Shown: positions 23,401 to 26,400 of the stretch, piece by piece
How positions within the stretch are numbered: position 1 is the first letter of the stretch
Layout of the letters: each line of letters begins with the position of its first letter
Source: Aplysia californica
Lineage: Eukaryota
Reading direction: 5' to 3'
DNA length: 64,000 bases
Assembly: GCF_000002075.1 (NCBI RefSeq)
Contig: NW_004797535.1
Span: 581,334-645,333, forward strand
The notes under the pieces: model-generated
Seen by the model: the letters and a program-made list of their open reading frames with translations, nothing else
What the model was told of the DNA's origin: nothing
The model's database searches: none
Made by a program: the position numbers and the translations under genes

Positions 23401-26400
23401 ACCGGGCCTGTTATATATGGTTTCCACTGTAAAATTCTCAGCTAAGGCAATAATATATGTACAACTCACCTTTACATTTCATTTCAAACATGAACAAAGA
23501 ACTCAAATGGATGTTTGAGCTCAAGGGTACTTTAAAGGAAATACAGGAAAGGGGTTTTATATGGGACAATATCCTACAAAAAAAAAGGTGGAGGGGAGTA
23601 GATGAGAACCAGCTTCCCATGAGCTGTGCATTGCAGAGAACCAAGAAGTCCATGACAGAAGCAAAGAGAGAATAAATCGTAAATATACCTGAAAGAGATG
23701 GTGCGCACATCTGGCAATCCTAACCGGAGTGCCCACTTTGAGGGAACCCATCCAGCACTTACCCCTATGCAATCGGTATCGGGACTTAACCTGAGTGTGC
23801 AACAGTGGATCATAAAAGTTAATTCATCTGCACAATTAAACTGTACACAGAAAAAAAAAACCCAGTGTCACTGAACACATAACCAGCTCTGGAAAAGACC
23901 AATTGAACCAAGTAGAACTAAGTCAGCCCACAGGAGAAGATCTGAAATTTCATAATCTGAAGAGAAATCAAAATATTTTTTCACAGCATAGCTTCAAAAT
24001 GTATGATCTCATGTCATCAGGCTTGGTGGATTTTTCTCTTCCTTTCAACAAAACTGTTCAAATGTAAGAAAAGAAACTTCATTTTCAGAAAGATAAATAA
24101 AGAAGTCTTTTCTTTTCATTTTCTTTCATGAAAACTTGAAAAAAAAAAGGTATATCTAAAGGGCCTCCAAAGCTGGTTACAGTGCAGAAACATGTGGCCA
24201 CATAGAGGAACACAATGAATGCGACTTATACTTTACCCACTACCAGCTAAGACATGAAAAGGGTAATCGAGTCTGCAAATTGGGAAATAAATCATGGATC
24301 ACATGACTGATTTTTTGCCTCTTAATATCCACATCATCTACTGATCAAAATAAAGATTAAAATTATTTTGTTGACAATGAAACCCAGAAGGTCAAGAAGC
24401 AGCTCAGATATCAAATGCTGCATAATGTTCACACACAAAAAAAAACTGAGCATACTACAAATAAAGCACTCCCGATAGGATTTGACATGGGAGTAAAGAC
24501 CAATTTTTGCAGAATCGATACCAGCTTCTAGTCTCATTTCCAAAGGTACCATACCCCAAAAATACAAGTTTTACCTGCTGGCAGGTAGGACTCAGTAGGT
24601 CACATTCAATGCATAACAACAGGAAAGGAGCATTGCCAAATAAGTCCAGAAAGAAAGCATTATCAGTTGGAAGTAACAAAATAAAAGCTTCCTAGAACAG
24701 AAAGTCACTTTTGTTACTTCAACCCTCGGAGTTTGTGTCCTCCTTAAAGGACTATTCGGTAATGCTCCAACAAAGAATTACCGACTTTTTGCCTTACCTG
24801 ATTACCACCTTGCCCATGACAAAAGAACACCCCAATGGGTCCTCCATTCACCGACTGACCAATTGTGTCCCAGCACTTACGGTCACTGCCTTTGTGGCGA
24901 ATCTAAAAAGCATGGCTCAATGAAGACAAATATTGCACAGGAAAAGAACAGAAAAAATGCATTAAAAAAAAAAAGTTAACAAAATTATGCACTGTAGTCC
25001 CTCCAAATTACGACTTCTTTTTTTAACACGGCGTCACTTTCGCCTGATTCTGTTACTTTTAGTTAGTGTGACTCAGCAGCCCACCGGAGCTCCCCAGCTC
25101 GGGGTCATGGGGTTAATGAGCCCAGAAGCGACTTTGCCGGTGTCGGTCAGGAAGTTCGCATTTTTGACTACGTTTAAAACGATATAACTTCTTCCTCATC
25201 CCACATAGCAAACCATTACAAGGATGTATTAAAAGCTCAATGTCTTGAGATTAATTCTGCGTTAGAATGGTTAATTTCTGTGCCTCAGTTTTTGTTCTAG
25301 ACAAGTGTTTGTAGAGTACCCAATTTGTCCTTTTTAGTTACAAACTTATGAATAAATGATTGTTAATTTTAAAAAGGCACGACAGATCTCTCCAAAATCT
25401 GCGTTAAACTGACTATGAATATCATGTCTTTTACAATGAGAAATCTTAAATCTGCGCGAGTAGTAATAGTCAAGTTGTAAGAGAAGAAAGACACACATCT
25501 GCATTTTTAAACTAAAGACGATCAGCGTTAGCTCTTATTTTATTATTAAACAAGAGAAAGTTACTCTGCGTTTGTTCATGAATCATGCTGTGTCTGTGGC
25601 AGCCTGCATTCAACTAAAAAGATATAATATAGAATCTAAGCGATTAAAAAAAGCACAAAACCGTGTAAATACATGGGTAGAGATAAACTTCTTGTATGGA
25701 ATAAAAATAATGACAGCTAACACATCATTCATTTTTAGTTTTTGTGTCGGAAATATGCGCAGACACAATTATGAAGGTAAAGAAATCAGTCACATTGTCA
25801 GTTATTGCAAATGGTCATAGAAACGAAAAATAAAGCTGGAAAAGTCTGGTGCTGATTCAGTGTCCCTGGAAAGCTAGAAATTATTCTTATAATCCAATTA
25901 CGAGAAGTCATCCCTATTATTCAGTCAACTTACAAAACCTAGACTTAGCGTTTTAAGAAAAGTAAGGAATTTCTGGAGTGTAACAGATACTGTTCGTGTA
26001 TTAGATCTACATTGAAGATGTATTCTAGCACTAAAATCGATTTGTACTTTTCATAGAGAAACTTCACGGTACCTTTTATAAACTTTCGAGAAAATATGCG
26101 AATATTCACGATTATATTAGACACATAAAGTTGTATTTGGAGGAATTACTTCATAGCGAATTGTGTGCCCGATGGATAAAGTTGCAAAATTACAGCTTTC
26201 TATTATATGCGCAGATGCCATCTTTTCTGAGTATCTGCACAAATGTTATGTCGTTCATGTTCCAAAAGTTCAACAGATTTTGACGAGGCCTTTTTTTTAT
26301 ATTGATTTTCTTTTCGTTCATGTTAGTAAAAAAAAAAATTACAATTTAGCATTGCCGACTCCAGCGCGTCTTAACGAAATAACCAGACAAGTTACAACGT

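Follow-up and report, generated by a model that had tools for sequence, protein, structure and literature searches.

A tandem pair of alternative lectin-domain exons in Aplysia californica GALNT7: a probable splice switch shared by heterobranch gastropods

The stretch of Aplysia californica DNA analyzed here (the window: 64,000 nucleotides of contig NW_004797535.1, positions 581,334 to 645,333, numbered below from its first letter) carries on its minus strand the gene GALNT7, named N-acetylgalactosaminyltransferase 7 in RefSeq. Mapping the RefSeq proteins X1 and X2 exon by exon gave a coding span of 17274..34596 with 12 coding exon positions, of which position 10 exists in two versions, exon 10A (24798..24902) and exon 10B (23689..23790). 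We consider it probable that 10A and 10B arose by an old tandem duplication and act as an alternatively spliced switch, and that X2 is functional. The duplicated unit would be the exon for the first half of the alpha repeat in the GalNAc-T7 lectin domain, with one version spliced between exons 9 and 11 to yield either X1 or X2. Exon 10A would be the default, and 10B a regulated choice, probably minor or tissue-restricted, that would depend on an activator or on repression of 10A. Both the pair and its alternative use are already annotated and hence not new to databases; the value added here lies in the comparative evidence and a functional hypothesis, not in isoform discovery. Full-text literature searches returned no paper on the Aplysia GALNT7 exon pair, and the Drosophila GalNAc-transferase PGANT9 was the only described case to turn up.

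An earlier note on this DNA, made from the letters of the window, had proposed that the two exons are used alternatively, and the RefSeq models agree with this. X1 (XP_005100983.1, P0382, 625 amino acids) contains 10A, X2 (XP_005100984.1, P0323, 624 amino acids) contains 10B instead, and the two proteins differ solely at residues 503-536/537, so that each of them carries exactly one exon 10 version. Alternative isoforms from the Gnomon pipeline are normally built from aligned transcript evidence. The coordinates, translations, phases and borders of both exons proved to be exactly those that the note had given: 10A is 105 nucleotides long (35 residues) and 10B 102 nucleotides (34 residues), and both are phase 0-0, free of stops, preceded by AG, followed by GT and terminated by CAG. 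They are separated by an intron of 1007 nucleotides (23791..24797) without notable repeats or RNA pairing. Upstream, exon 9 (27054..27275; 74 codons, phase 0-0, donor GTAAGA) encodes the end of the catalytic domain and the linker, closing with ...AWGE. Downstream, exon 11 (18667..18792) follows a long C-rich tract, begins with LFR and encodes the end of the alpha repeat and the beta repeat, and exon 12 (17274..17414) holds the gamma repeat and the stop codon. All junctions among exons 9, 10A or 10B, 11 and 12 lie in phase 0.

Gene identity was examined with individual exons and full-length natural proteins as search queries. On the X2 protein, Pfam recognized PF00535 (Glycos_transf_2), PF02709 (Glyco_transf_7C) and PF00652 (ricin-B lectin). 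The first two domains, with exon-level Pfam matches, identify a GT-A catalytic domain, and the ricin-B lectin domain is evident from PF00652, from the alpha, beta and gamma repeats readable in exons 10-12, and from lectin strands in AlphaFold2 models. The solved structure closest to the X1 lectin domain is 6IWQ, human GalNAc-T7 (E 3.7e-18), followed by PGANT9 A and B (E 2.6e-11 for PGANT9), and the Aplysia protein is about 53% identical to a vertebrate-type GALNT7 representative. By these structure matches, this identity and the RefSeq name, the closest characterized relative at the sequence level is GalNAc-T7 and not another isoenzyme. Mollusc GALNT7 proteins were reached with a Haliotis protein as the query; a mite GALNT7 query returned arthropods only, and an exon 9 query returned six short genomic fragments.

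Among the differences between the two versions of exon 10 are residues expected to matter for sugar binding. In the ricin-B sites of polypeptide N-acetylgalactosamine (GalNAc) transferases, the Asp of CLD and the His and Asn of CH..GGNQ contact GalNAc. Exon 10A, and with it X1, holds the complete set of alpha-site residues (CWD ... CH..GGNQ), and an alignment of 54 proteins of the GALNT7 clade, ranging from vertebrates to arthropods, shows its D514 and H531 (X1 numbering) conserved to at least 90%. In 10B, CWD is replaced by CWM and GGNQ is missing, so that the feature is incomplete in X2. Residue counts confirmed the composition that had been described for 10B, with eight Lys or Arg and no Asp or Glu, against four and two in 10A; the net charge is thus +8 for 10B and +2 for 10A. 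The polybasic character of 10B and its loss of the conserved Asp and His, which the note had emphasized, are thereby confirmed, and the counterparts of other heterobranchs described below are likewise basic. The CxD Asp is also absent from the beta repeat (CIM, exon 11) and the gamma repeat (CIG, exon 12), as had been reported. The 11-mer GTAAGTGCTGG is indeed common to 10A and 10B. A GTAAGT inside each exon had been raised as a caveat; among 10A exons it occurs in Aplysia and Biomphalaria only, and among 10B exons in Aplysia only. We therefore rejected it as a conserved feature, since it is not kept in other species, and regard it as probably incidental.

The direct resemblance between 10A and 10B is weak, with a shuffle p of 0.036 under one gap scheme and a z of 4.35 under another. 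Pfam gives a weak Ricin_B_lectin match for 10A and does not recognize 10B as ricin-like. Taken by themselves the two sequences are unconvincing as a pair, and its standing beyond chance rests on annotation and conservation, not on the similarity of 10A to 10B. The exons nevertheless have the properties of a tandem pair in being adjacent, equal in phase, similar in length and homologous, with homology read from the layout of Cys, CW and terminal Gln and from family alignments. The marginal similarity and the missing Pfam match are what would be expected if 10B were an accidental open frame with accidental AG and GT borders. That explanation is refuted by the RefSeq isoform, by syntenic conservation in other species and by the top profile match reported below, and we regard it as exceedingly improbable. 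In the Aplysia genome (927,310,431 bases in 4332 contigs), 10B is present once.

Conservation was assessed by scanning the exon 9-11 interval of orthologous loci for phase 0-0 open exons bounded by AG and GT and containing two cysteines. Exons of the 10B type, with intact frame and AG/GT borders, lie downstream of 10A in Elysia chlorotica (L007:9126-9227), E. crispata (L013:14308-14409), Physella acuta (L008:30066-30161, 98 nucleotides after 10A), the first Lymnaea stagnalis copy (L009:14191-14286) and Bradybaena similaris (L012:35351-35428, 26 codons). In a second Lymnaea copy (L005:14331-14426), the 10B type is the only exon 10 version. Aplysiida, Sacoglossa, Hygrophila and Stylommatophora have thus all retained the 10B type downstream of 10A, and these syntenic exons speak against the dead duplicate that the earlier note had named as a refuting outcome. 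The search that had been suggested for such counterparts, tBLASTn with the 10B peptide, did not retrieve them; the exon-pattern scan and profile hidden Markov models (HMMs) did. With HMMs trained without the tested lineage, the 10B open reading frame (ORF) took the top rank in six of seven introns, Physella being the exception with rank two, and E lay between 1e-4 and 0.08; Aplysia 10B itself was first of 142 ORFs (E 0.0024) with a leave-one-out HMM from the other heterobranch 10B exons. The homology of the 10B type is therefore weak but consistent as judged by sequence, and position and exon anatomy back it.

All seven heterobranch 10B exons, Aplysia included, show M, S, T, K or A at the position of the CxD Asp, lack GGNQ and carry a net charge of +3 to +8. 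The 10A exons have CWD throughout, have a net charge of 0 to +2, and are 97-100% conserved within heterobranch groups. The donors also differ. For 10A, six of seven species have a GTGAG or GTAAG donor (GTAAGG, a strong site, in Aplysia) and Biomphalaria has GTAAC; the 10B donor is GTATAT, GTTTNT or GTAGNN in every species (GTATAT in Aplysia), weaker than that of 10A. Strong 10A donors paired with weak 10B donors would suit a default use of 10A and a regulated use of 10B. The RefSeq annotation of both forms and this conservation among heterobranch snails and slugs together make it probable that the pair is a genuine splice switch of long standing.

The second Lymnaea copy (L005:13421-21475, contig CAXITT010000116.1) is a diverged GALNT7 gene with the 10B type only and no trace of 10A. 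Its exon 9 is 91% identical to that of copy 1 at the DNA level, with a synonymous divergence (dS) of about 0.35, and its exons 11 and 12 are open; the locus has fragmentary annotation and runs of N.

Exons of the 10B type evolve fast. Between the two Elysia species, 10B aligns without gaps at 73.5% identity with a ratio of nonsynonymous to synonymous rates (dN/dS) of 1.34, amid flanking introns that are 50-65% identical with many indels; the reference exons of the same pair gave 0.037 for 10A and 0.035-0.041 for exons 9 and 11. Under a rough neutral expectation for this pair, the probability of no indel is about 0.04-0.08 and that of a stop-free frame about 0.33, with survival of the splice dinucleotides not included. 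Between the Lymnaea copies, 10B is again gapless (72.9% identity, dN/dS 0.22; flanking sequence 44-61% identical). A gapless, open 10B within indel-rich introns indicates that the frame is kept and that most residues are free to change. Selection would then act on the frame, the two cysteines, CW.G, the hydrophobic strand, the terminal Gln and the basic composition, and the exact sequence would not be under selection.

How a choice between the two exons might be enforced was also considered. Nonsense-mediated decay (NMD) cannot enforce exclusivity because both exons are in frame, and the 1007-nucleotide intron between them leaves no steric block; on both points the earlier note had reasoned correctly. 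No U12-type sites occur at the exon 10 pair. The docking and selector pairing that had been put forward for the introns found no convincing candidate: the inverted repeats in three introns consist of low-complexity G/C runs and AT-rich arms with 70-76% complementarity, which is at chance level. Near 10B, no TGCATG or other shared hexamer is conserved.

As a separate observation, a long C-rich tract on the transcript just upstream of exon 11 (18800-18861) and a G-rich tract of the same intron, some 2.5 kb farther upstream (21340-21403), complement each other; the arms measure 21-45 nucleotides, are 71-95% complementary and are both of low complexity.

A second exon 10 is also found in caenogastropods. 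In Babylonia areolata (P0390/P0312) and Littorina saxatilis (P0392/P0303), RefSeq X1 and X2 isoforms alternate between the canonical exon 10 and a second one of equal phase, placed 1.1-1.8 kb further downstream. Unlike heterobranch 10B, this second exon keeps CWD, has a net charge of 0 or -1 and is not basic, and an HMM of the caenogastropod second exons matches Aplysia 10A, not 10B. A tree of all exon-10 versions lacked resolution and does not separate one origin from two for the heterobranch and caenogastropod exons. A third Babylonia areolata isoform, X3 (P0391), skips both versions and joins exon 9 in frame to exon 11, and a Nucella GenBank model has both versions in tandem.

These last two models bear on the idea that 10A and 10B are independent cassette exons that are not strictly exclusive, with substantial amounts of both-exon and neither-exon transcripts. 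As each length is divisible by three, a transcript keeps its frame whether it has both exons or neither; the annotated Babylonia X3 and the Nucella model are examples of each, and the lack of a detected exclusivity mechanism points the same way. Against this, Aplysia RefSeq holds one-exon forms only. The beta-trefoil fold needs exactly one copy of this half-repeat, and the other forms should be misfolded by-products, the Nucella tandem model being probably an automatic prediction. Independent cassettes are accordingly an improbable account of the pair.

Several observations weigh against a functional, regulated switch. No splicing mechanism that would enforce exclusivity was found in the sequence. 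The Elysia 10B ratio of 1.34 fits little constraint on the amino acids. Exon-pattern and profile scans of the Biomphalaria glabrata locus found no 10B-type exon, and the annotations of other heterobranchs contain the 10A form only. A basic stretch before the first Cys is common to 10A and 10B and accounts for part of the 10B charge. Finally, AlphaFold2 predicts that the strands of the swapped segment are the same in both isoforms, with confidence scores (pLDDT) of 87-93 for 10B in X2 and 89-95 for 10A in X1, and the underlying alignment consists mostly of 10A-type sequences, so the models show compatibility only. Some of these points would suit a duplicate exon in decay, occasionally spliced in as noise and yielding an X2 without a function of its own: the high dN/dS in Elysia, the weak 10B donors everywhere, the loss of 10B in Biomphalaria and the annotation of a 10B isoform in Aplysia alone among heterobranchs. 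Decay is hard to reconcile with a frame, splice dinucleotides, two cysteines and terminal Gln kept at eight loci in four heterobranch orders, with a gapless 10B beside indel-rich introns, with a conserved basic composition, or with a dN/dS of 0.22 between Lymnaea copies of which one has 10B only. We judge decay unlikely, and a retained switch remains the reading that we prefer.

If 10A and 10B do form such a switch, X2 would fold as a normal beta-trefoil whose alpha site is unable to bind GalNAc, as its missing contact residues suggest. With no such Asp in the beta or gamma repeat either, X2 would have no canonical lectin site and would be a lectin-blind enzyme, losing the follow-up glycosylation of GalNAc-glycopeptides that the lectin domain guides. 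The more basic surface of its alpha repeat would shift its preference to substrates that are acidic or unglycosylated, much as charge does in the PGANT9 switch; by this analogy, the positive charge of X2 may influence substrate choice.

In Drosophila PGANT9, tissue-specific splicing of exons 8A and 8B shifts the preference for charged peptides, and it is the charge of the swapped module that governs how such peptides reach the active site (Ji et al. 2018, Nat Commun, PMC6115407). That study closed by asking whether other GalNAc-transferases alter their specificity by splicing (PMC6115407). Alignments with 6E4Q and 6E4R indicate that the same module is exchanged in both animals, namely the initial half of the alpha repeat, which starts right behind the ...GE linker and extends to ...NQ, and in both the exchange alters the net charge (+2 versus +8 in Aplysia). 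The two systems also differ. Both fly forms keep CLD and CH.QGGNQ, whereas heterobranch 10B loses these motifs; the fly switch sets positive against negative and the Aplysia switch near-neutral against strongly positive, with its function in Aplysia being a prediction. The earlier note had suggested that the two switches evolved independently, which holds in that PGANT9 and the GALNT7 orthologue are separate genes; the greater closeness of the Aplysia lectin domain to human T7 than to PGANT9 (E 3.7e-18 and 2.6e-11) likewise argues for independent origins. Human GalNAc-T7 (6IWQ/6IWR), like the Aplysia enzyme, joins a GT-A domain to a ricin-B domain and has an alpha repeat of canonical form (CID ... 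CH..GGNQ); it differs in that its gamma repeat keeps CLD, where Aplysia has CIG. We know of no alternative alpha-repeat exon in human GALNT7. Compared with tandem mutually exclusive exons in general, the Aplysia pair is typical in being adjacent, homologous, of equal phase and similar length, and in encoding the same structural element, but the usual enforcers (NMD through a frame-shift, a short intron, U12 sites or RNA pairing) are inapplicable or were not found.

If the switch is true, it would be a second, independently evolved case of a GalNAc-transferase whose specificity is altered by splicing, in the T7 subfamily, in another phylum and across heterobranch orders, with the twist relative to PGANT9 that the sugar-binding residues are lost along with the exchange of exons. 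It would offer a natural pair of lectin-competent and lectin-blind enzymes for testing how the T7 lectin steers mucin O-glycosylation in mucus-dependent animals. A broader scenario can be offered tentatively, and we think it more doubtful than the switch itself. The switch might turn off the only canonical sugar site of GalNAc-T7 and present a fast-evolving polybasic surface instead, by which X2 would select acidic or naked mucins through charge; the rapid turnover of 10B might then reflect co-evolution with lineage-specific mucins, and the two Lymnaea copies might partly divide the functions. Such a switch might have been kept for about 200 million years or more, an age estimated from the taxa involved and not computed.

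Other exon 10 variants were encountered in paralogous genes. A paralogous GALNT7-like gene of Plakobranchus ocellatus (P0337) has two identical tandem exon-10 segments in its GenBank model, which are either a very recent exon duplication or an artefact of assembly or annotation. An Aplysia GALNT7-like paralogue on another scaffold (P0336) keeps CWD in its alpha repeat and has GSSQ for GGNQ, and the heterobranch counterparts of this paralogue (P0338, L006) have CWE. A protein of Octopus sinensis whose alpha repeat is non-canonical was rejected as an isoform, being a paralogue with 49% identity.

Elsewhere in the window, a 210-amino-acid ORF on the plus strand (41357-41989), upstream of GALNT7, contains reverse-transcriptase-like motifs (FADD...) and is probably a fragment of a retroelement of the non-LTR (long terminal repeat) class. 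A run of N at about 60280-60510 marks an assembly gap or masked stretch. Near-identical ORF translations occur at 61022-61360 and 62276-62562, with a similar one at 19471-19755, inside the intron between 10B and exon 11; their recurrence suggests copies of a dispersed repeat.

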